A stretch of DNA of 64,000 bases from Bugula neritina (GCA_964035545.1 OZ037772.1:1178001-1242000), one strand, 5' to 3'; shown: positions 3,530 through 62,374, counted from the stretch's first letter. Notes: a model not told the origin generated them from the sequence alone. Made by a program: numbers and translations.

Positions 3530-3553
3530 TTCAAACCATTTCACATATTCAGT

Positions 3554-15357: not shown

Positions 15358-16603
15358 GTTTATTTGCTAGCGAAAATATAGCAGTATATATTTTCCTAGA
15401 ATGTTGTTTAGAGACATAAAAAAACTGCCTATGCACAACATACTTTGCATCTGTTTAGTATCTAGTAATTAGACATAAAAAAATCAAAGCCAATTATAAG
15501 GCAAAAGACCATAATACTGTACTATCATTGGATAGTTCTTCATCAATAAACAGGTAGTCGCCAGTGGTGGATATGAACCCCTCCTAGATGTTTCTCGTAC
15601 TTCTTCCTCAAAAAACATTTTCATTAAGCCAAAAAGAAATAACAATACACCTTTTTAGTATACACTTTTTAATTTCTGACTGATATTTCACCTTATTTCC
15701 AATTATAATTAACTTTTAACCGGCACTTTTCTTTGTAGTAATTCCTACCCTTTAGACTGTGTACTTTGAAATGAGTCTGTTTTACTCGTTACATAAAGTA
15801 TAGTTGCACTGGCTACAGGTTGACACAAAAGCAAGCCTATCTTGATAAAATCATGCGCAAATGTAGAAACTACCGAGGAGTTTGTTCCTCATAATTAGAA
15901 ATTGACAAATTATTTTTAATCCGTTTAAAAGCATCTGGTTAGGGAAGCATATGACGTGTTCAATTTGTTATTCTAGCATTAACAATAACAGAATGCAATA
16001 ATTATAAGTTTATGAAAGTAATTTGTTTTCTTTCTAATTACAAATATAATATTTTAGCATATATTATTGTAAATTTATAAGGCTTGCATTAGCAGGGCAT
16101 AATTTCACAGTATCTCGTCCTCAGACATAACACTTATGTACCAATACGAGATACATTACATCATAATTACATGTTGTCTATCGGCAAAAATTTTGCAGTA
16201 GCCAATCATAGTACTATAACAGGGCAGTCTGAGTGTAGTATCTCGTTTATCGGCATAATTATAATAGCCCGTAGTTGAAGATGGAGTTGGAAGCTTTTCA
16301 AATACCTCCCGCATATAATAGCATTTATGCTAGTCCTTAAAACTAAATAAACATTATGGTAGACCAATAATCATGAAAGCTCTACTCATTTGTAACTGGA
16401 GGATTTGCAGCACCACAATACTAAATTTCTTGCATTGGAGGTGCTTAGGCTGTGTTGTCATAGTTATATGTACTTATTGGGGCTTGGTATAAAATTAAAC
16501 CTGACAATTATAACGATTAAAGTATTATTGCTGTGGTTTTAACTGACCAACTTTGGAGTTATTATCTCGATTCTTTGTCAGGAATGGTTAGATAATTTCA
16601 TGC

Positions 16604-16667
16604 AATAATGAGTTTTGGCTTTATATCATTATAAATAATGAGTTTTGGCTTTATATCATTATAAATA
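16604..16667. repeat. 30-bp tandem duplication
   Basis: AATAATGAGTTTTGGCTTTATATCATTATA present twice. Confidence 0.9.
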
Positions 16668-17749
16668 TCTACATTAATGGCAGCACTGAGCTAGAATTCT
16701 AATATCTTTTCAAGCTCATTGGGTGGCAGCTTATCGGCTAAATTTTATGCAGATATTGAATAATGTGGTTTGATAGTTATGCTATATTGTTAGGTTCACA
16801 AGCATCTTTAAAAAGTTATAATTATTGCGTTGACCATAGGGCAAAAAATTACCTAAAGAGAGGGCAGACAACTCCAAAAGATTGTTTTCGCAGAAGCAAG
16901 TAAAATTCAGCTAAACTGAATACTCCAACTGATCAACATTTTCATCTATTGAAATTGAAGAAAAGTTAAATATTATTATACTATTCTAATCATGAATAGG
17001 CACAAGCTAAAAAGATATTTATTTCAAAAAATATAAAAAGTAAAGTAACACAACAATGTTTGCAAACGCAGACCTAAAAATGTGAATATTCTAGCTTGAA
17101 ATTAAGTCTGAAATTCAGACTTTTCTAGGTTGAATTGACTTTAATTGACTCACCAGAAAAAACAATTCATAAAATTATAAAGACAAGCATATAATGAAAA
17201 ATGTAGTTCATTAGCAAAACTGGAGGAAAGCACTTTTTTTCTAGAAATCGTTCGATTACATAATACATTTTTGTGCAAATGATATTTTTTAATAAAATGA
17301 AACTGTTGTATTGTTTGGCTAGATGAAGTTTCAAAAGTATTTTTAATATTTTCTCAAATAAAGTAGACATGCACTCCATTTTCACATTTTTTGGCAAAAC
17401 ATATGATTGGGATTCAGTAGTCAATCAGTTAAGTTTGACACAAGGAGTTGTCACATCCATCCTAAAGAACAAGACCATCTACAATAACAAACATGGAAAG
17501 TACTTAAAATTACATTTAAGTTTACAATAATCCTTAAAATATATGTTGCCTTCTGCAAATGCTAAATAAAACACGATGTAATGCTATGTTTACTTAGACT
17601 AAATCTTGCTGACTTACAATGAAATTCATTCATTTCAATTTGAAAATTCCTGTCAATAACTTGACTATGCTAACAACTAATTGTAATACCAAAATCACAC
17701 TGCTACTTTTAGTTTAGGGAATTTATTTTCATTATTAGTTCAATATTCA

Positions 17750-19570
17750 GCAGAGGTTTTTCTTTAATGAACAAACAATAGGCATACATGCAGATGAAAG
17801 ATTAGGTCTAGTGAATACTAATTTTGTGCCTAACAAAAAAAAAATGAAAGACTGCATGAAAAACTAACAACTCTAAAAAAATGCAATTTGAATGAGGCTC
17901 AGGCTTTTAGGTGAGCAAGAGTAACCAGAAGAGCTACTTTAATGGAAGAAATTACTGACTGATTGTGTAGTTGCAGGCTGCATGGTGTGTTTTGATTGTC
18001 ACAACCACTTTTGAAAAGGGAAAATCCATTAAATTAAGACTACTGGCAAACAACAGAACGATAAGGAAAAAATACCAAGTAGAAATTCACTTCTCAAAGC
18101 AAACTGTAGTTAATGCATTATAGATGCTTAGAAGAAGCAGGCAATAGTGAATGCTATAGGGCCTATAGTGTAGATCAGGATTCTATACAATGACAAGTAA
18201 ACTGAAATTCCAGTGCACTTTGAAACTACTTGTAAGAATGGGCTTAGTGCTTTGTAGTGCCTTGAAATTTTTTCAAGTCTAATTGGCACCATGCTATTAG
18301 AATTCGCAGAGAGATGACCCTTTAAACTTTCACTTTAAACTTTAATACCTTCACGATTTTCAGTAAGAAATTCAATTTATCTAGGTCTGAAATTTCACCG
18401 AGTTGCATTGCAAGCCGCTGGTCAAAATGTTTAGTTTGTGATAACTTAATCAGCTGATTTCAGAATAACAATCATTGGGAATGACATCTTCATGTAGATA
18501 TAGATATTTATGCTTATAATTATATCGGCTGCCTTCATCAATCATCGATACTATGCTGCCAAATCAACTAATTAATTACAGTTGGAAACTTCAAAGGGCA
18601 TTGAATAGCAATTAAGCAAGTTATACTTTTAATATTACAAAAAGAACTTATGCATCAATATGATTTAAAATATAGGTGGGCACTCCGCTAGTGATATTAA
18701 CTGAAACTGGAACTTTTTTCATGCAGGAAAAGCAAAAACGCATCTCAACAGAAACCCAAAAATTTCCAGCACACTTTATGCTTTGACAACACGCACACAA
18801 TAACTTTGTTTATGGTACAAACCTTTTTGTTGATTGTTTTCCAACATTTTCACTAGAGCAAAGCCGAAAGAAATTTGGAAACTGCAAAATGATGCCAGCC
18901 ACCGTGGCATCATCTTCTCTGGAAAATTATTGACAAATCATCACCCAAAAACTTCAGCAAAGCCTCCATCAATAGTATGTAATACTTTAGGTGAAACTAA
19001 AAAGAAAGAGACAATATTTTCGTGTAATTTAACCCATCAATAAACGCATCAATAGTTAGTGTGGCCACGGTTTAAACCTCATTAATTTCATGCTATTTAA
19101 GGCTTTTACAACTTAAAAGAAGTAATTCATCTGCAAGAGAAATGTTAGGTATATGAAATGAGTAGAAGTGCAAAAGCAAGCAGGTATTAAGGAAGGAAGA
19201 GTTAGTAGGTGTACTTTGACTTGCGATAAATCAATGTGATACCAGATGTGAATTTTGAGGTGTGTTTACTCCAATCTTACTGAAAAGGTAGAAATAGCTA
19301 AATTTACGAGACACACAATATTTTATAAAACACTGCACATTCATTAAAACTTTATAAAACTCTAGTGTGAAGGGTGACTCACACTTTTAAACCGTCAATG
19401 AGCTAAGTTGTAAAAGTTTGATGAGAACCTTTTACTCTATAAATTTATGCAATATAAAATACTCTCCACATATTCAACAGCTACGAAGTTTTGTTGAAGA
19501 TAAACTTCCTCAACAAATATACAGAAAAAAGCTATTTGAAAGCCAAATTTCATTAGCATATTATAAGATT
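17750..19570 (+). pseudogene. Heavily decayed putative hAT transposase, N-terminal and central part
   Basis: Frame-broken fragments: CMVCFDC...EIHFSKQ (zinc-finger-like), HC-x-x-H-like at 19331, YSPHIQQLRSFVEDKL...KKLFES at ~19460-19545, in the order expected for hAT. Weak motif-level evidence only. Confidence 0.4.
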
Positions 19571-20043: not shown

Positions 20044-20360
20044 TAGAGAGAGAAAGAAAGTGGGAGAGGGGGGGTGGGAGAGAACGGTTAGGAGAGAGGA
20101 TGGAAGAGAAATGGGGTAGAAGAGAGAAAGGGAGAGAGTCAGAGAGATAGTGGAAAAGGGAAGAGAGAAATGTTAGGAGAGAGAGAAGGTGGGAGAGACG
20201 GAGAGTGGGAGAGAGAGAAGGTGGGAGAGACAGAGGGTGGGAGAGAGGGAGGGTGGGAGAGAGGGAGGGTGGGAGAGAGGGAGGGTGGGAGAGAGGGGGA
20301 GAAAGAGAGAGAGGTTGAGTGGAAGGTGTGGGAGAAAGAGACAGAGAGAGGAGTGAGAGA
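20044..20360. repeat. GA-rich low-complexity repeat (GGGAGAGA / GGGTGGGAGAGA units)
   Basis: Direct inspection; accounts for the spurious ORFs in 19943-20583. Confidence 0.95.
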
Positions 20361-23972: not shown

Positions 23973-24278
23973 TGTGGTGGTTCGTGGAACTACCAGCAGC
24001 ACAACATGTAGGGTCGCGTAATTGACCCGGAACAATGGATAGCCAATTAGCGTAGTTGATAGTTAGCAGCAATTGTAGTTTCCCGCTGCTAACTCAGTCG
24101 AAGCTAGAGTGTGAAATAGATTAGATGTGTAACTTGTTGGAAATAATGTATCGTGTTTTTATAATGTATAATTGTGTATAAAATATACTCGTTCACTCGA
24201 CTTAGCCTGGTGCAGTTCTATACTAGATAAATAGACTCTCTGGATAGCATATCAACCCAAAAACAGAAAACTATAACA
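23973..24278 (+). repeat. 5' LTR of Gypsy copy 2 (subtype B)
   Basis: TG...CA, direct repeat of 31162-31467. Confidence 0.97.
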
Positions 24279-24279
24279 G

Positions 24280-24297
24280 TGGTGGCAGCGGTGGGAT
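24280..24297 (+). promoter_or_regulatory. Primer binding site for tRNA-Leu (AAG/TAG type)
   Basis: TGGTGGCAGCGGTGGGAT, 1 nt after the LTR, is the 18-nt complement of the animal tRNA-Leu 3' end ...AUCCCACCGCUGCCA-CCA. Confidence 0.9.
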
Positions 24298-24309
24298 AGT
24301 GCATCCAAG

Positions 24310-25269
24310 ATGGAGACTGAAAATGCTGAAACTCAACCACCGGCAATCGAAGGTGAGCGTAGAGACAATGCTGTAGAGACAATGCCTGTTAACCATGTAG
24401 TAGAAGAGCGAAGGGTTCCGCGAGAACTAGCTGAAGACCGCTACAGGTTAAAGGCGCCCACCTTCACGGGTGAAGAGGAGGTGGAACAATTTATCCAAGA
24501 GTTTAGCGACGTAATGGACGTCGCTCAGTGGCCCCCTAGGGTGGCCCTGCTGAAGCTTAGAATGGCATTGATGGACAAAGCCAAGCCCTATGGGCTGGGC
24601 GTAGACATTGATAATATCTTTGCTTCTCTGCGGGCCCGCTTTGGCCTCTCGACTACAGATGCCAGGGCCCGATTACAGAGGTTGCGGCGTGATCCCCGCA
24701 CCCCGCTGCGGGAGCATGCCACCGCGGTCATGAAGCTTGCACAGATCGCGTACAGCGACTTGCCCCCAGTCAACCGCGAGAGGTACACCCTCGACGCTTT
24801 CATAGCATCTGTCGACGATCTGGGTCTCCACCACCAGTTTCTAGCTAGGGGAGTCACCACCGTTGAAGATGCTCTGACTGAGGGGGAAGCTTACCTCCTA
24901 GCTAACCAAATGCATAAAAGTCGCGGAAGCTCCCGCCAAGTGGAGATAGACCGCGCAGACACGGCCGCGGGACAAGGGGAGGAAACCCCCGCCGCGGCTG
25001 CCGTGTCCCAGTTGGCGACGGCATCAAAAGTCACTCAACTGACGGACATGCTAGCTAAGCTGATAGCAACACTGACCCCACAAAACCCAGTGAGTACCGC
25101 CCCTGAGCCCATGCGGCCATTGGCGCCGCCACAGGGAGAAACAGTCAGTTTTTGCTGGGAGTGCGGAAATCAAGGACATTTCCGCCGATATTGTCCCTTC
25201 CTAAATCAGGGGTTAAACTACCGCGGCCCGCAGATGTTCCCACCTTCCGCGGGCCGACGAAACCTCTAG
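24310..25269 (+). CDS. gag: Gag (capsid-like region plus CCHC zinc knuckle), 319 aa
   Basis: ORF directly after the PBS; APTFTG...FIQEF capsid-like start; CWECGNQGHFRRYC knuckle. Confidence 0.95.
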   Translation: METENAETQPPAIEGERRDNAVETMPVNHVVEERRVPRELAEDRYRLKAPTFTGEEEVEQFIQEFSDVMDVAQWPPRVALLKLRMALMDKAKPYGLGVDIDNIFASLRARFGLSTTDARARLQRLRRDPRTPLREHATAVMKLAQIAYSDLPPVNRERYTLDAFIASVDDLGLHHQFLARGVTTVEDALTEGEAYLLANQMHKSRGSSRQVEIDRADTAAGQGEETPAAAAVSQLATASKVTQLTDMLAKLIATLTPQNPVSTAPEPMRPLAPPQGETVSFCWECGNQGHFRRYCPFLNQGLNYRGPQMFPPSAGRRNL

Positions 25270-25274
25270 GGAAG
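25212..25274 (+). promoter_or_regulatory. Predicted -1 ribosomal frameshift signal (G_TTA_AAC plus pseudoknot)
   Basis: Heptamer 25212-25218 in the gag/pol overlap; stem CGGCCCGC 25224-25231 / GCGGGCCG 25249-25256; loop TTCCC can pair with GGGAA 25269-25273; pol is in the -1 frame. Confidence 0.75.
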
Positions 25275-28200
25275 AAGAAACGCAGGTCACCCAGACGGGC
25301 ACCGCGTACTGGCAACCAACAGTGGCAACAGCCGCGACGGACCAGCAAGGGGCTTCGCCCCGCGGCTGCCTTTTCTATGCCCCTTCACAACAGATTCACA
25401 GGGCTACAAGTCCAAGAATCTGGATGGGAGCACACAAAGGTAGCTGAGAAACCAGCCTCGGCACCCCCGAGGCCTACCTATCACCGCCCCAAGAGACCTC
25501 CTTCGCGACCCAAAGCGAGGGAGGTACTCCCTGCGAGAGTCAGGCCTGAAGGGAGAGTTCAGATGCAGCCCCATGGGAACAGCTATTTCTTGCCCGGTAA
25601 ACTGGAAGGCAAAGCTGTTACTTTTCTCATTGATTCGGGCTGTACCACGAACCTCTTAAGCCGCCAACTCTTCGACACCCTCAGTGCTAGGGTCAGGGGC
25701 GAGATGGAAGCATACGAAGGGGAATACGGCACCCTAGCTGACGGGTCGTGCCTTCCCTTCTATGGTATAATTGAGCTGACGGGACGAGTCCGCGATCAAA
25801 CGATCCAAGAGACGTTCATCGTCAGTCAGCTCAAGGAGGATGCTATCCTCGGGATGCCGTTCCTTAAACGGCACGGATGTCACATAGATTTTAGCAGATC
25901 TGCAATGATGATGTCCGGGCGGGAACTCGCCTGCGTCGACAAGTTCGGCTGCCCTTTAGTGGGAGGTGTGCAAGTGGTACGCAACCGTACCATACCAGGC
26001 CGCTCCCGGGCTACCATTCACTGCAGGGTGAATAGTAGCCGGATCTCTGGACTCGGGGTGGTTGAAGGCGCGCACGAAAAGATCCAACTTGCCAGCAGTC
26101 TGAATCAGCTGACTGAGCAAGGGGAGATCTTAGTGCAGTGCGTCAACCCCTTTACCGAGCCTATCAAGCTCCCGGCTGGGTCGATGCTGGGCCGTTTTCA
26201 CTCTGTTCAAGAGGGAGACGTAGGCCCGTCGCTGAGTGATGCGACAGAGGCCCCCCCTCGACACCCTATTCAGGGACGAGGGGCAGTCCCAACACATCTC
26301 CGGGAGTTATACGAGACGGCCAGTGGTGGCTGCGCGAGTAACAGAGAGCGCCAAGCTATGGCCAAGTTACTACGCGACTACGGTGATGTGTTCAGCAGCG
26401 GAGAGCATGACGTGGGACTGACTGGAATTGTCAGACACGAAATACCGCTGACTGCAGGGACAGTCCCTGTCCGGCAGCCCACACGCAGGCTGGGGCCGGA
26501 GAAAGAGAAGGAGGTTAGCCGACAAGTACGGGATCTTCTGGACCGGGGACTGATAGAGCCCGCCCATAGTGCGTGGAGCTCGCCAGTCGTACTGGTCCGG
26601 AAGAAAGACGGCAGTTGGCGGTTCTGTGTGGACTACCGCAAACTCAATAGCGTAACCATACAGGACGCCTACCCTCTACCTCGTATTGACGAGTCATTGG
26701 ACGCCCTAGCCGGCAGCAAGTACTTCAGTACGTTAGACTTGCTAAGCGGCTATTGGCAGGTTCCTCTGAGTCCCGACGCCCAAGAGAAAGCGGCGTTTAT
26801 CACACGGGACGGTTTGTGGAAGTGGAAGGTGCTGCCCTTCGGGTTAACCTCCGCCCCAGCCACCTTCCAGAGGCTGATGGAACAAGTCCTTAGCGGACTC
26901 CATTGGAAGACACTGCTGGTCTACCTCGATGATGTCATCGTAATCTCTCCAGACTTCGAGACACATGTCAGTCGTCTGCAGGAGGTTTTCGAGAGACTCC
27001 GAGGTGCCGGTCTTAAGCTCAAACCTTCCAAGTGCGCTCTGTTGCAGCCGGAGGTCAAGTACCTGGGGCACGTTGTCGGTCGAAACGGCGTGGCAACGGA
27101 TCCCGAAAAGGTACGGGCAGTAGAAGACTGGGTCACCCCTCAAGACTTGACCGGACTCCGGGCTTTCTTGGGGCTGGTAGGGTATTACAGACAATACATA
27201 CCAGACTTTGCGGGCATAGCCCAGCCGTTAAACCGGCTTACCGCAAAGGGAGTGACGTGGCAGTGGACTCCAGTCGAACAAGAAGCGTTCGACCGCCTCA
27301 AGGGCTGCCTCCTAACGGCGCCCATCTTGGCCTACCCAGACCCCACTCTGGAGTACATCCTAGACACGGACGCCAGTGACCAGAATGTTGGCGCTGTGCT
27401 GTCACAAGTGCAGGAAGGCCGAGAAGTAGTAGTAGCCTACTACAGCAAGTCTCTCTCTCCCGCTGAACGAAATTACTGCACTACCCGCAAGGAGCTGCTG
27501 GCAGTAATCAAGTCAGTGAAGCACTTCAGACCATACCTATATGGCAGGAAGTTCCGGCTGCGTACGGATCATGCCTCGCTGATCTGGTTGTGCAGGAGAG
27601 CAGAGCCCTCTAGTCAGGTCGCCCGGTGGCTCGAAATCCTAGCTGAATTCTCATACCGGATCGAACACCGACCGGGCAAGAGACACAGCAATGCGGATGG
27701 GTTGAGCCGCCGACCTGACGGAGGTTGCAAACAGTGTCTCAACATCGAGAGGACGGATGGAGGTCCCCCTCGATGCGAGTTGGAGACGCTGGCTCATCAC
27801 GGAGCACCGTTTGACTGGGATCAAGGTCAACTCAGGCAAAGAGTTGATGAGTCCCCGGAGGATATACAAAACCTCCGCGCCAACCCTGTACTGGCCGGTA
27901 ATGTTCGAGAGCTGAAGAAGCTCCAAGAAGAGCTGCCTGGAGTCGTGGCAGACATCTACCGGGCCAAAAGGGAAGGGCGACGACCCAGCGAGGAACGCAT
28001 AAGACAGGGATGCGCCGAATTCCGGCTATACTGTCAGCGTTGGGACTCGCTGCGGATCGGGCAGGATGGGTTGCTAACCATCTCTCTAGCTGCCAGCGGC
28101 AGACACCCGGAAAGGAAGAGGGTAGTCTGCCCCACAGCCATCCGCCGTGAGTTGATTTGGGATACTCACAAGCAGGCCCACGCAGGGGTCAAGCGAGTGA

Positions 28201-29780: not shown

Positions 29781-29804
29781 TTCAAACCATTTCACATATT
29801 CAGT

Positions 29805-30879: not shown

Positions 30880-31161
30880 TATGCTACCCAGAATACTCCA
30901 CATTTGGTGAAGAACCAAACTCGTGCAAATGCTTAACTGCTAGACAGGTTATTCCTTGTCTAATACCACAGCTAGCTAGTATTCCTCGTCTATCTACAGC
31001 TGGCCAATTGTATGCAACGGATCGTTATAACGACTCTGTGTATTATTATGTCTCTTCCTGTATATTATGTATTATTTTTGTCCACTGATGTATGCAATTA
31101 CTATTGAATGTTTTTTTTATATATATATATCAGAAAGATGGCTTTCTGCTGGTGGGGGCGG

Positions 31162-31467
31162 TGTGGTGGTTCGTGGAACTGCCAGCAGCACAACATGTAG
31201 GGTCGCGTAATTGACCCGGAACAATGGATAGCCAATTAGCGTAGTTGATAGTTAGCAGCAATTGTAGTTTCCCGCTGCTAACTCAGTCGAAGCTAGAGTG
31301 TGAAATAGATTAGATGTGTAACTTGTTGGAAATAATGTATCGTGTTTTTATAATGTATAATTGTGTATAAAATATACTCGTTCACTCGACTTAGCCTGGT
31401 GCAGTTCTATACTAGATAAATAGACTCTCTGGATAGCATATCAACCCAAAAACAGAAAACTATAACA
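31162..31467 (+). repeat. 3' LTR of Gypsy copy 2
   Basis: Direct repeat of the 5' LTR, followed by TSD ATAT. Confidence 0.97.
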
Positions 31468-32407: not shown

Positions 32408-32535
32408 TGTAGTTGTACTAGTACAGTAGTAGACCTAGTAGTAGTACTAGTAGTAGTAGTAGTAACAGTACTATTAGTAGTAGTAGTAGTAGTACTAGTA
32501 CTAGTTGTAGTACTAGTATCAGTGGTAGTAGTAAT
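32408..32535. repeat. (AGT)n-type degenerate microsatellite
   Basis: Inverted counterpart at ~61800-61955 with a different repeat number. Confidence 0.9.
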
Positions 32536-48700: not shown

Positions 48701-49921
48701 GACCAAAATGCAGTTACTACAAACAAAGTTGATTGCTAACCTTCGAATCCATGTCAAAAGAGCAATCAAAAGAATAAAGGAGTTCAATATTTTAAATGGT
48801 CCTGGAGGTGTGAACCTGGTGTTGGCACCTCTATTAGACAAGATTATGATAGTTTGCTGTGCTCTCTGTAATCTACAGCCACCATTGGTGACTGATGAAA
48901 TTTAGAATTTGAAGTAAAAATGTGTTATTTTTACCTGTGCCATTTTACTAGAAATCTATATTTAGCTTTTATATAATATTCTTGTAATTTTTTCATCATA
49001 GCAATGAATAAATTACATTGTTTCCACACTAATATTTCATATATTTATAGTTTATTTGAAAGCTTACGTTGTTTATTGTGGATGTTGACTGCTGCAGAAA
49101 CTGACCACTATTTTCAAAATTTAAAAGGAAAACAAGTTCCTGGTGCAGAGGTGGCAGAATATGTAATACAATTTTTTTCAAATTGAAGGTAAGAAATGGG
49201 GTCATTTCAGCATTCATAAGCTGCACATAATAGCTTATGTGTATATTTATATGGTGTGGACTTGCTATTACTGCGAGCTACAATATTACTAGCATGGGTG
49301 GTTGATTTAACCTCTTAGTAGTTCCCATGCATGGCTCACATACAATAAAATTCTAGTTGAATAGAATATTTACTATTGTAAAGTACAAGACAAATGACCA
49401 GAATATTTCATTTGTTAAACAGAAATTTTGTAATACTACTGTGGATTGGCTACTGTACATTAGCTAGATGTAGGCGGAGTCTACACTAGTCAAGCCATCC
49501 AGATGCATATACTAAAGGGCAATTCAAAAACCAGCCAATCAAAGTCATGTACCAAATTCACAGATGTTTACTGCAAGCTTCCAATGCTAAACAATAACCC
49601 ATTCAAGCTGCAACAACAAATAACTACTAAGCTGGCAGTTATGTAATAATTGGCCTTAAGTTGCAAAAGTGTACCAGGTCATTTTTCTAGACATGAAATT
49701 TTTAATTGCATTTTATAAACACTTAATTTAGACATTTTAAAAAATCATTTCAAGAGTCATCAATTTAAGATATGAAATTAAATAATGCATGAAAAAAAAG
49801 TTGCACAACTAGCTTTTAGAAGCATGCATTTTGCAATTGAACTTGCAGAATTTTATATCAGTTACGATGGTAAGACATTGACCTGGTACACTTCGCTGAT
49901 TGGCTGAGTTTTACATGGTCT
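45748..49921 (+). mobile_element. ISL2EU / PIF-Harbinger-type DNA transposon (4174 bp) with 1080-bp terminal inverted repeats
   Basis: Ends AGACCATG...CATGGTCT, 2-bp TSD AT (45746-45747, 49922-49923), empty site GGCAATTGAAC at ~43837-43847; IRs 45748-46827 and 48842-49921. Confidence 0.9.
46835..48905 (+). pseudogene. THAP-remnant + HTH + DDE_Tnp_4 (HARBI1-like) transposase pseudogene
   Basis: GQPTEQNPTPTLHLGY (THAP C-terminus), KFYTGIP, probable intron ~47271-48111, LLLALMKLR, IIDCTEI, MADRGF, RIHVKRAI (catalytic E replaced by K), in-frame stops at 48441 and 48546. Confidence 0.88.
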
Positions 49922-52900
49922 ATTGCCACATATGTCTTAGGAAGAAGAAAACTCCCCAAAAATTCTTGGTTTGAAAATTCTAGTATAATTAAAATCACTT
50001 AATATATGTCTTTGAAATGCATTTTGCCACTCTGCAAAATTGCAGGAACAAATATTGCATGAAGTAATAAATGATTTATGAAGTAATTAACAAACCAATG
50101 TAAAAACTGTTGTTGTATATAGAACACAACATATTGATTTTCTTCAATTTCCACATCAAATCTATATATTCAATTATATCTAACCAATGCTAATAAACTA
50201 AACATGCATGCATACAAATATTTGCATCATATGCAAGTAATATTAGCTAATTAGCAACTATAGCATTTTTTTCATTATCTTTATTGCTTGCATATGTCTA
50301 AGTATTATTAAAATAAGGTTTTTATTTGCAACTTTGCACCACAAATTACATAAAATCTAAAAACTTGGGTTGTGACATGCATTAGGGCTACCTATACACA
50401 AATAGACCTTCATAAAACTCTCAATGATTTTATTCAACTCATGTATGCAAAAGTTTTGCATTAAAACAATTCTTCTAAATCACCCTAGAGCAGGAAATTA
50501 TTACAAAAACAGCTTCTCATATATAATCTTTCTCCAGATTAATTTTTTTTCCTGTATTTAAACTAACTTAGCAAGTGAAGATTGTGATATCACTCAGGTA
50601 ATCACATATATATTATTCATAGCTGTAATACTTTAGCAATGAATAGATCATGTTTAATTTCCACTCTACCTAGCAGTTTTTCAGAATTATAGAGCTATGT
50701 ATATCGTGAACTTGGAATAGCCTAATAGTTTTACATGTGTTTATAGCTAGACAAATTAACTTAAAAAGCTTACAATAATTAGATGATATTTGCATTCTTT
50801 TGAAGGTTATGGTGAAGCTACTGCAAAACTGGCCATTAGTTTAGCATAATATGGAATGCCACGAAAAAGCATGCCAAACAAGCAATGTTTATTTACCTTA
50901 CCAGTGCAATTTTATCACCTTAAACACAAAAGCAAGTATAAAATACACATCCATATTAGATTAACTGTCAAGTTAAAAAAAGACAACATATATTCATGAG
51001 CTGGTTCTGTTTGCACAAGTACAATTTAGACCAGCTTATTATTTAGATTGCCACAAAAATATGACGTAAAATATGTCTTTAATCATTATTTTGATATTCA
51101 CTGGTTGAAGATATTTTTTATATCCTAATATGTAAATATTGTACATAAATCTTAAAAATTAACTAGGTGAATAAGGAAAACTGCTAATTTTATGAAACTG
51201 TTATGTTAATAAAGACAATGGCTATCAACAAATCCCACCAGACCACAAACTAATTGTAAATACTAAAGCAATTATATAGTGCTATGTGTTGATCTAGCCT
51301 AGTCAATACACCACAAATATGTATTATGACATACCACATTTTAAGTACTGGGTTACCATTTATTCTAATGGGTATTTGTTTAAACTGTTATATACAGCTT
51401 TTTGCACTACCAATATACAAGCCAGTTGTTATTCTGTCACTTTTTATCTACATCTTTTTTTAATGCCAGTTACTTGTTAGCTTCAGTACAAACAGCTAAA
51501 CATTCTACTCTACAGCCAATCTTACTGTTAACTCTTGTTTAACAATATTACAAGAATCTAAAAATTTGAGTGCGTTTTAAGTATAATATTCTATCATTAT
51601 AACTTTTAAATGAAACAATAATATGATAAATGCATTAAAACTTTCTGAAAAATACACCTAAATAATCAAGGCTCTTTTTAATTTTCTTTGATTTCCTATG
51701 CTTTTTTTCTAATTACAGCAACTTCTGACTGGGGATTGCCACGGTTAGTTTGTAACAGTAGGCAATCCAAATGAAATGAATAAATAGGAAAAAACATGAG
51801 AAATCATGCACAATTAAGAAGAACCTTGATTATTTAGGTGTATTTCTTGATGTCTCACTAATTTTAAGCAAAAAGCATTGTTCATTAGCAGCTAAAATGT
51901 AAAAATGGCTAAAAACTGCAGATTTCCAGTGTGTACTAAATTAAATAAAAGGACTCAATCACCTTTGCAACATAATTCAATAATTGCATGGTCAAGCAGA
52001 ATAAACTACAATTAACAGCAACAACAGTGTAATAGTTGCGTAGAAAAGTTGTACTGCAAAAAACTAAAAGAATGCAAAATCTATAAATGTGTGCTACGAA
52101 GTAAATGCTGAACAGACATCATGAAATAGTGTACGAAATACAAACTATTAAACTTACCTGTTGATCTAATGCAGCCAAAACCTTAAGCTTAGAGTAGTGG
52201 AATGGTGCTGTTCGATGTTGATATGCTACAAGTAGCTAAGATGACTCAAATTCTTGCCTTTAGGAGTAAGAGGCCTCAGCTCAGTTTCAACAAAACTTCC
52301 AATAATCTCAACGGATGCGCTCAATTAGGAGCCACAACAAAGCACACCCATGTCATTTTAGTAAACTCTAAAAAATGAACGGAAATAAAACTGTTAGAGA
52401 GTAAACAGAGAAACATATAGTGATGGGGGAAAAACCTGTCAGCAAAGGTTATATACACTCATAGCCATAACACGAAGAAAAAGATAATGAATAACAACCT
52501 ATTCAAGATGACACAAGAAACCAAACAAATTTCTTTGACTAAAAAATATAATTAAATACTATATTACTTGGCAAAAAATATTTGTTTTGAACAACGTATT
52601 ATTGGGAAGAATTGCCAGTGTCTTAAATTTTGAGATTAAAATTTCTGCCTTATAGCGGAAATAGAGAGGCAATCAATAGTGTACAAAACATGTTTTCAGT
52701 CATTGGCTGTTGACTAAATTGACAAAGTTAAAGAAAGCTTCCATATCATTATTTATTTTGTTCTCAAGTGTGTGGTTACAGTTTCATGAGTCAGAAATAT
52801 AATTATTTGAGATATGAAATCAAATGTAGTCAAAAGAGTGTCATACAATTTAAAATGTAGTAATAGAGCTTTGACAATAATTTCTTCTGCTAAGTAAAAC

Positions 52901-53739
52901 AGGTACCATTATGAGCTACTTATCTTTTAGAGATGAACATCAAGGATGTTGAAAACAAAATAGTTGTAAATTACAGCAAATACCTTTCTACTTACCTAAC
53001 CAGAGAAAATAAGTTTTCAACCTTGCATGCACTCAGCTGGTTTTCAATGTTTGGATCAGTGACATCTTTATAACTGATAGCAGCATTATGTGATAGCTTT
53101 AGGAATTGTTACCTTAAATCTAAATTATATAGAACAAGAAGTGCAAAAATATGGCATTAGTACTCATTGCACAATACACACTTGCTAGAGTTGCTAATCT
53201 AGCATCACATTAATTTAAGAAAGACAAAATTTTATTACTGTTCACAAATGATGAATATTAAAATTTGAATAATTAGACAAATTAACAATGATATTGATGT
53301 TACTTCAAACATTACTAATGGTAAACACCAAAATACTAATAGGAATAGTCATGTTAACATCAATTAGAAAAGTAAAGATAATTTGAAAATGAGACAGTTT
53401 ATAGGTCTAACTCTTATAGTTGACAAGCAATTACAGGGCAGTCATATTGATGTAGGCTACCCTCAAAATGTAGCACTTTAAAAATATTAAAAAGACAGCA
53501 CATATAAGAACATATTCTTAAAAATAGGCATATGTGACACCTATATTTTGATTAACAAAGAAATCTTCTTTACTTTATTAATCTAGCTCATATAATGGTA
53601 TTCTGTCTTAGTATGTTATTTTAATACTTGAAATCTAATCAGCTACAGAAAAGTACTTCAATTCAAAGGCCTTCATAATTATTCTTTAGTTTGCTATTTA
53701 AATAGACAGTAAGGTTGATGAATAAAATAAAAGTTAGTA

Positions 53740-56700
53740 CACAGAGAGAAATATTAGTGTTAGAGTGAACATTAGCTGACAACTAAAACAGCTCGTTTTT
53801 TGGCTCCTAAATTGACCAGCAGTGAACAGAAATTAGTGTCAGGTACTGTTCACAGTGAATAGTATGTTAGATCAATGTTGATATAAAGAGTTGTGAAGTT
53901 GATTCTTTGTATTTATCACAATGAGCCAAGTTATGTTCAATGGTGATCTTATATATGTTCAATGGTGATCTTATATATGTTCAATGGTGAGCTTATATAT
54001 TTTCAATGGTGATCTTATTTATGCTCAATAGTGGTATTATCTATGTTTAATAGTGATCTTATTTATGTTCAATAGTGATATTATATATGTTCAATAGTGA
54101 GCTTATATATATTCAATGATGATCTTATTTCTGTTCAATGATGATCTTAGATATGCTCAATGCTGAACTAAGTTATATTCAAAGCTGAACTTATAAATGT
54201 TCCATGCTGCTCTAATTTTGTTGGAAATAAGCTTCTGCAAAAATTATTACTGATCACTCTGAACTAACTTGTCATAACTTCTAACTAGTATGAGAGTATA
54301 GTAATGTAGATTTTATTGTATATGATAGTTGAATATAAGAAATGCAACAAAAAATAACTTCTAAAGATTAAAATAAGAAAAAAAAACATGAAAATAAACA
54401 TTTGCAAAATTTTTCTACGACTGTAAATTCAGTTAACTTTTCTCAATATTAGCAGAACCTGCTAAGACCATAGTGTGTGTCATTACATTCTTGCTCTGTA
54501 GTGTATCGATAACCAAGCAGTTGTAGTGTGTAATGGTTAGCACACCTGTGTGCAAGTCCGAGGTCTGTAATAGTAACCCAAGTACGGGAGAGGGAAGTTT
54601 TATAACTAATTCCAGCGGTTAGTAAAGTGCGGTAGTACTCCAAGAGGAGTTGAGTGGTCAGGGAAGCTTGAAGGAGTAGTATAAAAGGCAGCTGAGTTCT
54701 TGAAAAGTGGGTAGATGTAGTGTCGAGAGCACCCAGTGACGCTTGTAATGTAGTGGTGAGTGCGCCTGCTTGCAGGCTGAAGGTCTCAGCATGATTCAAA
54801 GTTTTGTAGCGGTCAAATTCTTTTTTGTGCTCCTGTTCAGCATCTTTGAGTGCACGTTCTTCAAAAATGTTATGGGATCTACAACAAAAGATAAAAGTTG
54901 GGTAATATTTAAACTGTATTAGTATGAACAGTAAACATTTGGTTAGGATATACAATCACAAGCAGCGTAAATAAATTAAGTTCAACTTTGAAGAAGCTGA
55001 AGTCTAAGGCCAAAACGAATAGTATCAATGATGTTAGCTATGAATCTTTAAGCATATTTTCAGCACCATCATACCAATTGTTTGACTCTGAATAACTGTA
55101 CAGGCTTTGGCAAACTTATGATCATTATGTTGCGTTGTGTTTGGGTTAGTTTGAGCTTATCAAAATTTAGTAACAATTTTGGCCATCATTTTATTTTACT
55201 TCTTTCTTAATTACAAATGCAAGAGCTGTTAGGCATAATTAGATTAGTTAATAGAAGCTTCACTGCATTAAAATTATCTCAAAATGTCAGTGAACCACAA
55301 TTTAAGCTAGAGTCAGCATTTTATATGGACCCTCATATCGAGATAACAGATATTGATAAGTTTCAGTATGTCTATAAATTGAAAAACAAATAACGTACTA
55401 CCAAGAAAAATATTGCTACTTAAACATGTTTTTATATTTAATTGTGCTGTGCAAAGATAAATAAAAGAATAAACTGGTAGCACGGAAGTTAATAAAAATT
55501 TTTGCCAACTTTGCCAACTCACCACCAATATTGGCATTTTGGTACTTAGCTATAAAACAAGAAGCTAGCTTGGCAGCTGCTTAAGGCTAATAACTACTTG
55601 TAGGCTGCTAAACTGCATTATTAACAATACTTCTACAATGGGGGGGGGGGCTTCAAATTAATGAATTTAGCACGAATTGCTAGAAGGTGAAGGGGAAATA
55701 AAACGCTAAATTTTTTGAAAATAGATTGTTACAGGAAAACTCGTATCAAATTGATATAGGAATAGAGTAGTTTGGGAAATATCAGTCAATGTGGTCTCTT
55801 AAAAGTTATAGTTGCACAAATTCAATTATCTGTCTGCAGCAATAGTCATACTGATACTGTCATTGTGATATAAAATGACAACGTTAAGCAAATGATTGAG
55901 CTTACCTTTTGCTGCAATGATAACTTCAGTTCCTAACTCTGAAAGGAAGTGATCATCTTCTATCTCTGAGAGGTAGCTGCAATCTTTACCCATGTGATGA
56001 AATGAATCAACGTTTTCCATGTTGTGAGGTTGTTTGGAAGCACAAATTCACTGAATCTCAAAGCACAACCTCTTAGTCTGAGCCTCTGGTGTTCACTATG
56101 CCGGCAGAATATTTCTTCTGTCAATAGCCATGAATGAAAACTATGTGCTGTTATGTAATAACCTTTGTTTTGCTCTTTCGATGCTTGGTAAGCCAGTTTC
56201 TTGCCTTTGAATTACAATTTAAATATTTCCTTGCTATAGCTCTGTTATGCAACATTTTCTTTTGTTCCACCAGGTAGTTTACACAAGTTACTAAGGCTTT
56301 TGAAATGGTTCACCTTATCCACAATTGACTATTCAGTAGCTTGTTTCATTGTTAATTTTAAGCTTCTTATTTGAAACACATTTGCTGATAACTGAGTACA
56401 TTGGAGTTTAATGGTGCATCTCCCTGATCTCTCTTTTAGACACATTTTAAATTAGTTGGCTTTCCTTTCCATGAATGAAATTAACTAGTGAAGCCTAAAC
56501 TACTCATGCAAGAGAATTGTGCAGTTGAATTTTGTTGTTGATAAATTCAACTTAAGTCTTTGATAAACGGAGTGGGACAATGTTTAATAGTAGTCTGGTA
56601 ACAAACTATTTGAAAATGTCTTGGGTTCAAAAAAATTTCGAAATCATAAACAGCTAGTAGGTTGAAGGAGTTTCATTCCACTGATATGCTCCCCAGTTAG

Positions 56701-57503
56701 GTTGTATTTTTTGTTTTGGTACTAAGTATTATATACCTATATACCCTTATATAACTTCCATATCGATTGCTAAACATAAAATAACCATTAATGTGATATA
56801 TTTGCAATAATATTTAAATTTTCCCAAATTTGTGTTGAAAAAAAGCATTAAATGCATTATTAATAACATTTTTTCAAAAAACAAAAAATATAGAAAATGC
56901 AAAATTAATAGGTTTATGCAGAGCAAAAAAATTTATTTGTGTGCCAATTATAAAAAGCAATTGACTCAAATTTATTTAAATACACATATATTTCAATAGT
57001 GTTCAAATAAATTGCACGTAAAATGTATAAATAGCATCTAACTGGGAAGCACCAATTGAAATGACCCAAATGTAGAGTTCAACTTTATCCTAGCTTCCTA
57101 TAAAGGTTTGTGATCATCATTGGTGCACATGTGAACGAATAATGTTGTTAGGTGAACAACTGCCAATTGTTCCATAATTCTTATGTAAATAAAATTTTGC
57201 TTGAACATATGTAGTTGTAGCATTGATCTCATTTTCTGCTCCTATCAACTACTGTTTAGCTTCATTCAGACCTAGGGATGATGATTACGTAATACTTGTG
57301 AAAAGTAGTGTTGACTTAACAACTAAGTGGTTTCAGAGCTACTACAAAATATTTTTCAGCTTACACTAATCGGATTAATTTTCAATTTCATCAAAATAAG
57401 TGCAGGTCTAACAACTATTAGAGGTGTGGTGCAGGCTATACTGACAATAAAAGGCTCTTTGAACAACTTTAGTGCAAGCGCTGCACTAATATTTCTCTCT
57501 GTG
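53740..57503. mobile_element. CACTA/EnSpm-type DNA transposon (3764 bp), no intact transposase
   Basis: Perfect 20-bp TIR CACAGAGAGAAATATTAGTG, 2-bp TSD TA, empty site in the other arm at ~37900-37915. Confidence 0.88.
53933..54215. repeat. 22-bp minisatellite (ATGTTCAATGGTGATCTTATAT), about 12 degenerating units
   Basis: Direct inspection; subterminal in the CACTA-type element. Confidence 0.92.
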
Positions 57504-57786
57504 TAAAGTAAAAACTAAATAAATTGAGAATAATATCTCCACTCTAAGGTTATAATCCTTATAAATTAACATTTTAATACTCCTGTTATCCTTAGGTATA
57601 GTTGTTAGCAATTTAACTATGAGCTCAAAGCCAAATGTCAGTATCAGCATCCCCATTACATTGACTAAGACTGACTTTATAACCCTCAAGCTGTGGCACT
57701 CAATTTCTATAAGTAGTAACTAATAACAAATATAAAATTATTTATTTGCTACTGATAGTGATAATAATAATAATTAAAAATAATAA

Positions 57787-60753
57787 CATGATCCATTAAA
57801 ATAGAACTAATAAAGCCAACGACGTTAATGGTATGTCTAACTAAACATGGCATGTCTCGTCTGGCAGTGGGTATGTGGAGGGCCAGGCAACCTACGGCCG
57901 TCAACCCGTTAATGGCACAACTAGAAGAAGATACTCAAGAGAAGACAACAAAGTTGTCATGAAATGCTGCTTCAAAAGTACACCCAAATTGAGAGGTTAT
58001 AGAAAAACAATGTATGAGCTCTGTAGACCCGGATCAAAGAATTATTTAAAAAGAATGTGCAAACGCTGGAAAACAGAGGAGAGTTTAACATCAGCGAATA
58101 GAGACTAGCGGATTAAGCAAGAACTATGAAGAAACACAAGCATTTTATGGAAGAAGAACTCCATAAGATTGAAGAAGGAACCTTGCAAGAACTAGGCACA
58201 TCAATTGGTGAAGAAGATAATGAAGAGCTAAATTTGCAAATAGAGGATGTTATAGCACAACATGAGATAGCATATAAATCAGCCATGAGAATTTTAAGAG
58301 TACCTAGTTCAGAGGTAGAAAAAGTGTTAGTAGAAAAATTATAAATGAGCATAACAAACTATCTAATGATCGACTAACACTAAGAGCCCTTAGGCACATT
58401 GAGAGGGTCAAATTACTACAGGCAGTAAAACAGATTAATGATGTGCTAAACTGTGTTGAGATTATTAATACCATTGAGCTTAATAACACCACCATGGCTT
58501 GTGCGAAAAATAAGAAAAACAGAACAAGTGTGTAACAAAAAGGAAAAAGAAAAACTGACAATGTACAAGTATGGAAAATACGACTGCAGAAGAAATAAAA
58601 AGAAATTAGATCAAACTTAAGTAAAATAGCAGAGTGAAAAAGTAGAGCTTACAATGATTCATTGAGAAGAATGGTTGAAGAAAAATATAGGATAAAGAAC
58701 AAAGAGTGTGGTGTAGTGATTGAAAAACTGAAGCAAAACCTGAGAGCTGTAAGCCAGAAGATAAACAGATATACAGAATGAGTTGATCAATATAATCAGA
58801 ACACAATGTTTACAATGATAAGCGCTTTTATCAAGAATTACGAGGAAATGAATACGTACATCTAAAGAGGCACCTGACAAGGAAATCAAAAGCATTCTGA
58901 TAAAATATATGGGGTCAGCCAACTAAAAATAATACCAATGCAGAATGACTAAATAAAGTTAGCAACAAATTGGAGCATATGTAAAGACAAGGAAATTAGA
59001 TCTTAGAAACGATGCAAACAACTGGAATAGCAATTAATGTCATAAGGTTGATAAGAAAAAGCATGAAACCTGGAAAACACAACTGAAATACCTGGAAGAA
59101 AAGATAAGAGAAATAAAGATCAAACTAAGAATTTTCCAAGGAGACTCTTTATCTCTATCCCTTTTCTCCAACTACCGATTCGCATGACAGAAGCGGCTCA
59201 ATGATGCAAATTTCGACGAGACAGAAAACAAACCATCTCCTATATGTGGATGACCTGAAGTTAAATAGGAAATCAAAGTGAGAACTGGAAGCTTTGGTAA
59301 ACACTGCCGGGATCTTCACAAGGAATATAGAAATGAAATTTGGATTGAAAAATGTGCCACACTGGTTATGAGAAAGGGAAAGAAAATTAAGGACACAGGA
59401 ATCAGTTTGCCTGATGAACAGGTAATCAAAGATCTGGGTGAGAAGCCGTATAAATATCTAGGAGTTCTTGAGATTGATAGAATACAAACATATGAAATGA
59501 AAAATAAGATCAAGGAGTACTACAAACAAATAAGAAAAGTTCTGGATTCAAAACTGAATGGTGAGAACACAATCAAAGCAATAAACACATGGGCAGTAAC
59601 AGCAGTGCATTACACAGCTAGAATACTTGACTGAACTGTTTCATGAGCTAAAAAATATAGACTGAAAGACAAGGAAGCTAATGACAACAAACCGTGCACC
59701 CTATCCGAGAGCAGATGTAGGCAGGCTGTATTTTAGCAGAAGGGAAGGCGGTAGAAGAATGTTGTCAACTGAAAAATGCATAAAGATTGAAAACTGCAGC
59801 ATGTCAGACTACATAAATATAACATAGACTGATAGAAACACCACACTGAATACCTTCCTAAAAGACAGAACAGCGGTAGAACTAAATAATGATAAAGTGA
59901 TAGAAAGAACTGATGAGTGTAAAGAAAAGCTTCACGTGGTCAATACATCAAAATGGTGGAAGACATGAAAGCATTTTCCTGGAACTGGTTGAAGTATGGT
60001 TGGCTGAAAAAGGAAACAGAAGGACTGCTGACAGCTGCGCAAAATCAACTATTCACTACTAGAAATTATAAAGTGGCTATGATGAGAGAACAGGGTAGCA
60101 AGAAGTGTGGAATGTGTAACGCAAGAGACAAAACTTCGATGCACGTATTGAGTGAGTTTGAGAAGGTAGCAGAAGGAGAATATAAGAAAAAACACAACCT
60201 TTTGGCATTGATAATTTCAATAGTAGTTGTGTGAACTTCGTGGGTTTCAGAAAAGTAAGAATTGGTACGGCCATCAAGCAGAATAAGTACTGGAAAATGA
60301 TAATGTGAAAACCTTGTAAGATTTTAACATACACACTGACGTAGTCATCAAAGTTAGGAGACCCGATATATTAGTAGTTGACAAGCATAATGCTGAAACA
60401 ACGATAATTGATATCACAGTCCCTGTTAACTACAGAGTAAAAGAAAAAAATTCGAAAAGTTAGGAAAATATCAGAATTTAGCACTAGAATAAACCCGCCT
60501 TTGGAAAACATCAAAAAAGTCATCCCGTTGTAACTGGAGCCTTTGGAGCTTTATACAAGATTGTAGACTGGCTGACACTACTTGGAGTAGCTGAAAACAA
60601 ATGCTCATTAATTCAGCAGACACCCTTACTAGGATCAGGATAAGCTCACATCCTGAGGAAAGTTCAAGCCATTTCAGCCTAGTATAACTAGGCTAATGGT
60701 AAAAGGTTACACCAGCTAAAAAACTACGGTCAATCAACAATAATAATAATAAT
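57787..60753 (+). pseudogene. Decayed R4/Dong-like (restriction-like endonuclease) non-LTR retrotransposon
   Basis: Fragments IFQGDSLS, HLLYVDDLK, YKYLGVLE, KLNG..IKAINTWAV, ETEGLLTAAQ, CxxC knuckle remnant, RPDI..VD...IIDI.VP; (TAA)n on both flanks, as known for Dong-type elements. Confidence 0.85.
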
Positions 60754-61799
60754 AGTGCAGTTGGTTCTATTATTATATTAGCATATCGATTATGACTTTT
60801 CGATTGCCACCCTGATACTATGAGTAAAATGTACAAGCATACGTGAAAGTATAGATATGATCATAAGTATAAAAATAGGTATAAGTATAAATATAAATAT
60901 AGGTACAAGTATAAAACGAATGATTATATTATTAATAATATTAGTCAGTGATACCTATAACCGTAATGGTTTTTAGACTTGCAGTTATCATTAACATTAG
61001 CTGAGTAATATGATTAGTTAAAATAATGGTATTCATTATTATATCATAGTTATAAGTTATAACTCTAGTCTCTAAAGAGCAACAGCAAGTGTAATTGGGA
61101 TATTCATATTAAATTTCATATTCACATAGTGAAATGTTTATGTTATGAACTAATTTATTCCTTCAACATTTAACTATAAATATGATTAACACTAACTTTG
61201 ACCAGCAGTATTACTAAAAGAAGCGTATTACAAATATAAGATAATAAAATTCTAGTAGTAGGACTAATAGTATTACTAGGTCCAGTATTATTCTTGTTAT
61301 CTTATTCATCATTCATGAGTTATCAAATTTAAAATTACTACTTATTAGCATCAGCGTATAAAAAGTAAGATCATTAGGAATAATTATCATGAGGTATGAT
61401 CTATGATTTGCATTATCCATATATAGTTTAATATCAATATGATATATTATTATTGCTGATAGTCTATGTTATAGTTAAATTTATACTTATCTTTACAGTT
61501 ACCTATAGTAGCACTTATTAGTTATTTGTGGTAGCCAAACTAATGTTTAATATTAATAAATTAAACTGAGTATCATAAAAGTGTTACTAAGAATTTTAAT
61601 TATAATCGTAATGGTGATCATATTACTTTATTATAATTATTATATTTTATCATTAATGCTAAACTGAGTTAATGCATATACTTTGAGTTTTACTATTACT
61701 CATTATATTTACACTTATAGTAAAACTAAATATGTAAAGGTTATACTTATACTATTATTATTCGTATTTCATTAGACTTACATCTAAGATCGCAGTCCT

Positions 61800-61955
61800 A
61801 TTACTACTACCACTGATACTAGTACTACAACTAGTACTAGTACTGCTACTAGTACTAGTACTACTACTACTACTACTACTACTACTAATAGTACTGTTAC
61901 TACTACTACTACTAGTACTACTACTAGGTCTACTACTGTACCAGTACAACTACAA
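61800..61955. repeat. (ACT)n-type degenerate microsatellite
   Basis: Source of the Ser-rich ORF 61758-61949. Confidence 0.9.
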
Positions 61956-62374
61956 ACTTTGAAAATAACTGCAAGAAAGGTATGACTTACTCTTTTTCTT
62001 AGTCTTACTGTGACTCTCAGTCGTAACGGTAATGTAAAATAAAATTGTGAACTGTAAAGTTAAACCCAAGGCTGAAATTTATTTAATTAAATTTAGACAA
62101 TCTGAATCATTGGCTCAATCCTTGAGTTTGACTATTACTATTATTATTAGTGTTACGATTGTGATTATCATTGGCATTATGCCATTATGATTATCATTAT
62201 GATTGTAATTGTGGTAATTCTAACATTAATTATAATCATAAATTAAAAGGTAATGATTAATGATAATTATTTTCATTTTGTAATCATAATGATTATCATA
62301 ATGATGTAAATTTTGATGTAAAACCAAAATACTAAAACTAAAAGTAAAAGTTATAAAATTAAATGATAAAATAT

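Follow-up and report, generated by a model that had tools for sequence, protein, structure and literature searches.

The stretch analysed here (hereafter the window) covers 64,000 bp of the Bugula neritina assembly (GCA_964035545.1, OZ037772.1:1178001-1242000), with positions counted from its first base, and holds a large inverted repeat in which an insert occupying 16093-45145 interrupts a reversed copy of its own sequence between 15382 and 62375. We refer to the interrupted sequence as the outer copy and to the insert as the inner copy, and we interpret the locus, with good confidence, as the nested and reversed self-insertion of a ~20.3-kb non-autonomous cut-and-paste DNA transposon. Its constituent features are the following.

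15374-15381, no strand: AAATATAG, host bases adjoining the outer right terminus, candidate for one half of the 8-bp duplication belonging to the outer copy
15382-16092, minus strand: terminal 711 bp of the outer copy's right end, severed by the inner insert (inverted match to 45145-44435)
16085-16092, no strand: first copy of the target-site duplication, TGCATTAG
16093-16132, plus strand: left terminal inverted repeat, CAGGGCATAATTTC..., 26/40 with the right end
16093-45145, plus strand: inner copy, 29,053 bp, both termini present (8-bp duplication, inverted ends, empty site)
44435-44442, minus strand: uninterrupted target, CTAATGCA (both outer flanks and the metagenome contigs L002 and L007)
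45106-45145, minus strand: right terminal inverted repeat, CAGTATATATTTTCC... read inward, 26/40 with the left end
45146-45153, no strand: second copy of the target-site duplication, TGCATTAG
45146-62375, minus strand: outer copy resumed, from 704 bp inside its right end to a private break (collinear to inner 44442-31980, 98-99%)

The exact 8-bp duplication TGCATTAG flanks an insert opening with CAGGGCATAATTTC (16093) and closing with TATATACTG (45145), so that the bracketing and the CAG-initiated imperfect inverted ends reported by the first-pass annotation are seen directly. This 8-mer or its complement occurs seven times in the 128 kb of both strands, with a chance of ~5e-5 at a fixed position. 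Comparing the window with itself, 15382-16092 is the reverse complement of 45145-44435 (98.2-98.5% identity) and 45146-45747 that of 44442-43841 (97.8%); because of these two inverted matches, the two flanks rejoin into one sequence mirroring the right end of the insert, as previously described. Both outer flanks pair with 44435-44442, and this CTAATGCA is therefore the uninterrupted target, now precisely placed within the right end of the inner copy and also unbroken in two metagenome contigs (L002 706-713 and L007). On the right-end side of the outer copy, the inverted homology ends exactly at 15382, and the reversed self-insertion, initially put at ~700 bp from the end, is measured at 704-711 bp from the outer right end.

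The two ends of the insert match in register and without gaps at 26 of 40 bases, which is the top non-self 40-mer score among ~128,000 window positions on both strands (runner-up, 25), and their similarity fades beyond ~40 bp. A pattern built from 25 shared end positions retrieved only 15382, 16093 and 45145 even at 3 mismatches, and nothing (0) in shuffled sequence. Taken together, the duplication, the ends and the rejoined flanks are confirmed to lie far beyond chance.

Un-nested relatives of the element were recovered from metagenomes, namely L002 (18,604 bp; Joint Genome Institute (JGI) sample 3300002729) and L003 (15,653 bp; JGI sample 3300003318), together with the short contig L007 (1,114 bp, identical to L002 404-1517). 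Positions 115-18604 of L002 are collinear with the element (98.5-99.5%), starting 110 bp in from its right end and reaching window position 17841, 1.75 kb short of the left terminus; L003 falls in the same range of identity. Neither a nested copy nor any of the private insertions described below is present in L002 or L003: L002 displays the intact self-insertion target, the empty sites of a Harbinger-type and of two CACAG-ended elements, and a single ATAT where a Gypsy element sits in the inner copy, a site that is empty in L003 as well. A 30-mer adjacent to the junction is present exactly in both. Summing the 18,490 bp covered by L002, 109 bp of right end and 1,748 bp of left end, the un-nested unit measures about 20.3 kb, close to the ~19 kb first estimated once later inserts were removed, and the idea of a large non-autonomous element with terminal inverted repeats existing as one unit is borne out by contigs carrying that unit un-nested with its target intact. 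In addition, L002 and L003 run like the inner copy straight across position 31980, where the inner-outer homology stops; the left half of the inner copy is therefore part of one unit with the shared right half, and only the outer copy has the break at 62376-62383.

Inverted homology between the inner and outer copies spans the 13 kb on the right-hand side of the inner copy (8,485 aligned bp, 98.7% identity, Kimura two-parameter distance 0.0133) and is interrupted by five large insertions or deletions.

45748-49921: 4.17 kb, outer copy only, 1.09-kb inverted ends
39996-42116, plus strand: 2.12 kb (2,121 bp), inner copy only, no end features seen; in L002 and L003, missing from the outer copy at 51650/51651
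53740-57503, no strand: 3.76 kb (3,764 bp), outer copy only, perfect 20-bp CACAGAGAGAAATATTAGTG inverted ends, TA flanks; empty site in the inner copy and L002
34113-36669, no strand: 2.56 kb (2,557 bp), inner copy only, CACAGTTGGTTTAAGGTCA inverted ends, TG flanks; empty site in the outer copy and L002
59354-60783: 1.43 kb (1,430 bp), outer copy only, no end features seen; in L002 and L003

Both the 2.12-kb and the 1.43-kb segments are found in L002 and therefore represent deletions, in the outer and the inner copy respectively. With such an outside reference, each of at least seven later insertions and deletions can be assigned to one arm, making the locus an ordered record of these events. 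The self-copies being diverged by 1.3% and heavily invaded, the structure is old and probably inert.

Large inverted arms are also what an inverted duplication (by template switching, a breakage-fusion-bridge cycle or sister-chromatid transposition) or a fold-back assembly artefact would leave, but this origin is extremely improbable here: the arms differ in sequence and by the seven or more arm-specific insertions and deletions mentioned above, the junction is offset by 711 bp, and a perfect 8-bp duplication lies at true element ends. At the identity observed over the 8,485 bp, and with arm-specific insertions having their own empty sites, the arms are therefore neither a recent duplicate nor an artefact.

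The recurrence of the unit bears on another explanation, in which the inner insert would be a macrotransposon or composite, made of two small elements and the DNA between them, mobilised once and corresponding to no family unit. The interior of the element, which is non-coding, AT-rich (~30% G+C, compared with 55% in the Gypsy element) and contains a dead long interspersed nuclear element (LINE), does resemble ordinary intergenic DNA. However, the pattern search with up to 3 mismatches retrieved the three known ends only, with no internal terminus-like sequence, and the outer copy, L002 and L003 repeat this 20-kb arrangement, so that we consider a composite very unlikely and retain the nested insertion of a single family unit.

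Divergence among these sequences was estimated from 5,347 gap-free four-way columns (outer copy, inner copy, L002 and L003), giving the following pairwise differences.

Outer-inner: 1.12%
Inner-L002: 0.67%
Outer-L002: 0.50%
L002-L003: 0.11%

Across the same columns, private sites numbered 33 in the inner copy, 22 in the outer copy and at most 2 in L002 and L003. It follows that the inner and the outer copy each diverged on their own from a common form, with almost no shared derived changes. In the left half, the inner copy differs from L002 by 0.54%. L002 and L003 look like the common form, and may correspond to a master-like copy, to a collapsed consensus of several copies or to an assembler's mosaic.

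Beyond their imperfect pairing, the two ends of the element share subterminal motifs: AGTATCTCGT occurs 17 and 145 bp from the left end (L+17, L+145) and 76 bp from the right end (R+76), AGACATAA occurs at L+31, R+31 and R+90 and is thus common to both ends at offset +31, and the terminus is partially repeated at L+127. CAG-initiated, short and imperfect inverted ends, combined with subterminal repeats and a duplication of exactly 8 bp, are most typical of the hAT superfamily. Judging from these same three features, the element most likely belongs to hAT, a label that we regard as reasonably probable within the broader nesting interpretation, itself held more firmly. The left end, CAGGG, fits the hAT terminal motif (C/T)A(G/A)NG, and the right end, CAGTA, fits its first 4 positions only. 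Regarding the target consensus nTnnnnAn, the A of position 7 is found in both TGCATTAG and AAATATAG and the T of position 2 in neither, two sites being too few for a judgement.

The coding content of the element was explored through stop-to-stop open reading frames (ORFs) of at least 55 amino acids searched against Pfam. Outside the Gypsy element, these revealed neither a hAT transposase nor any gene-fragment domain, and the only solid domains were HTH_Tnp_4 and DDE_Tnp_4 inside the private insert 45748-49921; accordingly, the gene fragments once listed among the cargo were not recovered. The hallmarks of a hAT transposase (BED finger, RNase H-like DDE domain and hAT dimerisation domain) were likewise absent from the ORFs of the element and from the left flank, and no transposase was visible by eye in the left half of the element. 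A non-autonomous element is consequently the best reading of its ORF content. Rfam and tRNA scans returned no RNA genes, and PDB sequence searches with two ORFs gave chance-level matches only. Look-ups of identical proteins, intended to reach beyond the window end or up to the left terminus, returned no record. Scanning a viral contig collection for the termini yielded 0 matches; a metagenome contig collection searched with the terminus pattern and the junction-adjacent 30-mer also yielded 0, a result that is uninformative, this collection being one without L002 and L003.

Several of these observations weigh against the interpretation of a hAT element nested in its own family. The right end reads CAGTA rather than the usual CAGNG, the duplications match the hAT target consensus at position 7 only, and no hAT transposase or partner element was found, so that the superfamily is guessed from end features; the hAT label given in the first-pass annotation thus stands on the 8 bp, the CAG ends and the subterminal repeats, and is weakened by the right end and the target consensus. 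Furthermore, L002 and L003 might not correspond to one third copy but to collapsed or mosaic assemblies, and they stop 1.5-1.75 kb before the left terminus, so that no second two-ended copy with a different duplication was seen. Finally, the left half of the outer copy, with its left terminus and second flank, lies beyond the window, and its completeness and its own duplication are only presumed.

The same nesting might alternatively involve another superfamily making duplications of about 8 bp (P, Sola3, Zisupton, Merlin or an atypical MULE), for which the element without detectable transposase, the CAGTA end and the half-matched target consensus leave some room. The CAG start, the short imperfect ends, the subterminal repeats and the duplication of exactly 8 bp nevertheless point to hAT, making these other assignments unlikely. 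P elements, for instance, have longer and better inverted ends starting with CATG; the 8-bp duplication is present here, with ends only 65% alike compared with the well-matched ~31 bp of P, and no THAP-domain transposase was seen. MULEs usually display duplications of 9-11 bp and long inverted ends, and a typical Mutator/MULE (inverted ends of at least 100 bp) was discarded in view of the 8 bp and of a likeness that is gone after ~40 bp. Polinton/Maverick (6-bp duplication, long inverted ends, protein-primed polymerase and integrase genes) was rejected on the 8-bp duplication and on finding no such domains, and CACTA/CMC (CACTA-Mirage-Chapaev) on the termini CAGGGC and CAGTAT, which with 8 bp are not of the CACTA type with its 2-4 bp.

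At its far end, the outer copy departs from the inner copy at 62376-62383 (inner 31980), slightly correcting the limit of 62374 given at first. Past this limit, 512 bp on the inner side and ~320 bp on the outer side show no likeness to each other or to the rest of the window, and after these stretches each copy has a Gypsy 3' long terminal repeat (LTR), with different flanks (inner ATAT, outer TTAT). The extension of the inverted repeat onward to 63999 was found to be only a separate Gypsy copy with a different flank, the outer Gypsy LTR ending at 62697. The outer stretch is as follows.

62376-62696, no strand: ~320 bp found in the outer copy only, beginning with (T)GTAGTGAGTAGTG; no homolog in the window, absent from L002 and L003

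This private sequence begins right after ATAT, where composition shifts sharply on the outer side only. From 62376 onward, it is probably the edge of another insertion (possibly of an LTR element) that leaves the window and itself holds the Gypsy copy. An outer copy fractured at 62376-62383 would account for the abrupt stop of homology and for 320 bp that match nothing in the window or in L002 and L003; the inner copy would then have inserted into a truncated relic, with no CAGGGC terminus followed by AAATATAG downstream. However, the private sequence starts with TG just after ATAT, like the LTR element insertions of this region, the composition shift is confined to the outer side, and at least four other private insertions reveal a locus that gathers transposons, so that we hold a fractured outer copy to be somewhat doubtful. 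If the outer copy is instead complete, its remainder would follow the bounded insertion in reverse, ending ...GAAATTATGCCCTG and then AAATATAG. Two candidates for an end at this place were set aside: a CACTACAA-like string (62374-62381) spans the private break, with 40-mers scoring 16-18/40 against the right end, and an alternative left end at the homology break gives 40-mers (~62376-62391) of only 6-18/40, with L002 and L003 continuing through.

A second junction was identified at the beginning of L002. Its positions 1-114 reproduce the last 114 bp of the right end, read outward to ...TATATACTG; five mismatches separate them from the window copies, two of these falling in AGACATAA motifs, and the right terminus is joined directly to position 110 (CAATTATAAGG) of an inverted copy (L002:1-122). 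It does not correspond to a hairpin of adjoining sequence, and the window contains no junction able to yield it. This junction could be a second independent inverted self-insertion near the right end, a terminal 109-bp inversion or a chimeric contig end, L002 ending inside the would-be duplication. If it is a nested insertion, its partner would be element positions 1-117 ending CAATTATA, followed by CAGGGCAT. We give little credence at present to inverted self-insertion near the right end being recurrent in this family. Were both junctions true insertions, a 20-kb non-coding element would be drawn to its own transposase-binding end region, and recurrence would produce repeated double-Ds-like structures able to break chromosomes or to form hairpins.

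In the scenario that we propose for the window, the resident outer copy lies ~1.3 kb downstream of a TRIM-like host gene, and a second copy would have been excised elsewhere, possibly from the sister chromatid, the homologue or another locus. A transposase supplied in trans would have recognised the CAG-initiated inverted ends together with the subterminal AGTATCTCGT and AGACATAA motifs, and would have inserted the excised copy in reverse at TGCATTAG of the outer copy, 704-711 bp from the right end of that copy, the repair of staggered cuts doubling the 8 bp. By the time the two copies parted, the dead LINE was already part of the unit. From then on, the inner copy gained the Gypsy and one CACAG-ended element and lost 1.43 kb, and the outer copy gained the Harbinger-type element, the other CACAG-ended element and, probably, the further insertion at 62376 holding a Gypsy copy, and lost 2.1 kb. 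Depending on whether the private insertions of the inner copy preceded or followed the jump, the DNA moved would have measured between ~20.3 kb and 29 kb.

The kind of structure is known, as a double element, and what is unusual here is its size, a conclusion that is well supported; the possible recurrence of self-insertion is also of note. In the double Ds of maize (Ac/Ds, hAT), one Ds lies reversed within another, and it is the paired ends that lead to aberrant transposition and to chromosome breakage. The locus described here likewise has a non-autonomous element reversed inside its own copy with an 8-bp duplication, and it shares the layout in which element ends lie close together in direct orientation, here with 711 bp between the outer right end and the inner left end, and with inverted arms of more than 13 kb. 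By contrast with double Ds, the unit is about ten times larger (~20 kb, not ~2 kb) and sits in an animal host; its copies, 1.3% diverged, have been heavily invaded, and no transposase partner or breaking phenotype is known. The locus offers a natural animal example of the structure behind McClintock's chromosome-breaking Ds, built from a roughly ten-fold larger unit. Between its two short imperfect ends, ~20 kb of non-coding sequence with a dead LINE in it behaved as a single mobile unit, of which more than one copy exists, which is unusual because non-autonomous DNA transposons are usually small.

By analogy with these systems, the paired ends might undergo aberrant transposition and generate chromosome breaks if a transposase were present, and the arms, if transcribed, could give rise to hairpin RNA. 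In maize, Mu killer is an inverted duplication of MuDR that arose by rearrangement and for which silencing is demonstrated; as an inverted-duplicate transposon locus potentially giving hairpin RNA, the present structure would be comparable, with an origin by transposition instead. The transport of long DNA between short ends also has parallels, the hAT transposase of Tol2 and other hAT vectors moving tens of kilobases; those are engineered constructs, whereas the element here is natural. Three questions arise from the locus: what transposase mobilises the element, whether chromosome stability suffers from the double structure, and whether this structure feeds into small-RNA silencing.

In the literature, nested Ds elements are rare, probably since they break chromosomes, and Ds-like elements can carry filler DNA including retrotransposon pieces, a compound Ds-like element of 7.3 kb being described (Du et al. 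2011, PMC3260210). Alternative or aberrant transposition of such end pairs, and macrotransposons, have also been documented (Xuan et al. 2011, PMC3239180). Compound Ds-like elements and Ac/Ds macrotransposons similarly have hAT ends moving long unrelated DNA (PMC3260210, PMC3239180), but unlike the 7.3-kb compound element, the 20-kb interior described here is the same in at least three sequences.

Several other transposons ride in the two copies or were inserted into them.

23973-31467, plus strand: Ty3/Gypsy element private to the inner copy, 306-bp LTRs, 4-bp duplication ATAT, open pol ORF of 1,542 amino acids
62697-64000, minus strand: 3' part of a Gypsy copy (98.5% identity with that of the inner copy) embedded in outer-private sequence, flanked by TTAT as against ATAT
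45748-49921, plus strand: Harbinger-type element private to the outer copy, HTH_Tnp_4 at 48132-48440 and DDE_Tnp_4 at 48549-48902
57800-60783, plus strand: degraded non-LTR (LINE-type) retrotransposon of the outer copy, frameshifted reverse-transcriptase pieces with a YVDD motif
37626-33550, minus strand: inner equivalent of this LINE, its 3' 1,430 bp (outer 59354-60783) deleted

The LTRs of the inner Gypsy are identical at 305 of 306 positions, and its pol ORF encodes protease, reverse transcriptase (RVT_1), RNase H and integrase (rve) domains in Pfam, with a best database match at 72% identity. Given the different flanks in the inner and outer copies and the empty site in L002 and L003, Gypsy was rejected as shared ancestral cargo, and its arrival in the inner copy is later than the formation of the unit. 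The LTRs differ by 1 base where ~4 would be expected at the divergence of the arms (P ~0.085), which weakly favours an arrival later than the jump as well. The dead retroelements proposed as cargo are thus represented by the degraded LINE, common to all copies and already aboard the ancestral unit, and do not include Gypsy, whose pol is open, whose LTRs are nearly identical and which is absent from L002 and L003. A single Gypsy family appears three times in the 64 kb (4-5214, 23973-31467 and 62697-64000), at ~55% G+C against a 30% background, its copies being 98.5-99.1% identical when compared by identity alone. A third Gypsy ORF following pol (224-273 amino acids) has no Pfam match and 97 relatives, JGI sample 3300002729 containing one at 99% identity.

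Within the LINE, the piece at 59269-59631 has 1,879 relatives among protein representatives, the full-length ones carrying RVT_1 and zf-RVT, and one 88-amino-acid relative, 98% identical, is encoded on L002, L003 and L007. A 34-bp G+C-rich stretch in its N-terminal part (57879-57913) is present in the outer copy and missing from the inner one, and is apparently present in L002 at 7613-7647, as read from a gap between blast matches rather than from direct alignment.

The insert at 45748-49921 contains HTH_Tnp_4 and DDE_Tnp_4 and is therefore a Harbinger-type element; its 1.09-kb arms are 99.6% identical, and its empty site is found in the inner copy and L002. These inverted ends are unusually long, with AT on each flank compared with the usual 3-bp duplication, and the DDE ORF extends 61 bp into the right arm and misses the first 54 profile positions. 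The elements at 34113-36669 and 53740-57503 are unrelated to each other and both have CACAG...CTGTG ends with apparent 2-bp duplications, TG and TA respectively. The insert initially classified as CACTA bears CACAG at its termini, with 2 bp duplicated on its flanks, where CACTA ends and 3 bp would be expected; these two elements, in neither of which a protein domain was found, may belong to the CACTA-Mirage-Chapaev group or be Tc1-like. The larger one holds a 22-bp tandem array at 53866-54239. Elsewhere in the element, a purine-rich GGGAGAGA-like microsatellite at 20046-20329 produces two overlapping low-complexity ORFs of ~140 amino acids on the minus strand, which are not genes.

Finally, the left flank of the structure contains one host gene.

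8015-14105, plus strand: TRIM-like gene, with a RING exon (8015-8254), a B-box exon (10731-11057) and a C-terminal ORF of 260 amino acids (13323-14102)

The presence of this gene in the flank indicates an animal host. The young Gypsy copies with open reading frames, the Harbinger-type and CACAG-ended elements and the background of 30% G+C are unlike human DNA, and we do not regard the sequence as human. Its C-terminal ORF has no Pfam or PDB match, and its 45 relatives, at 51-82% identity in short metagenome contigs, suggest that it is part of a large and fast-evolving gene family.

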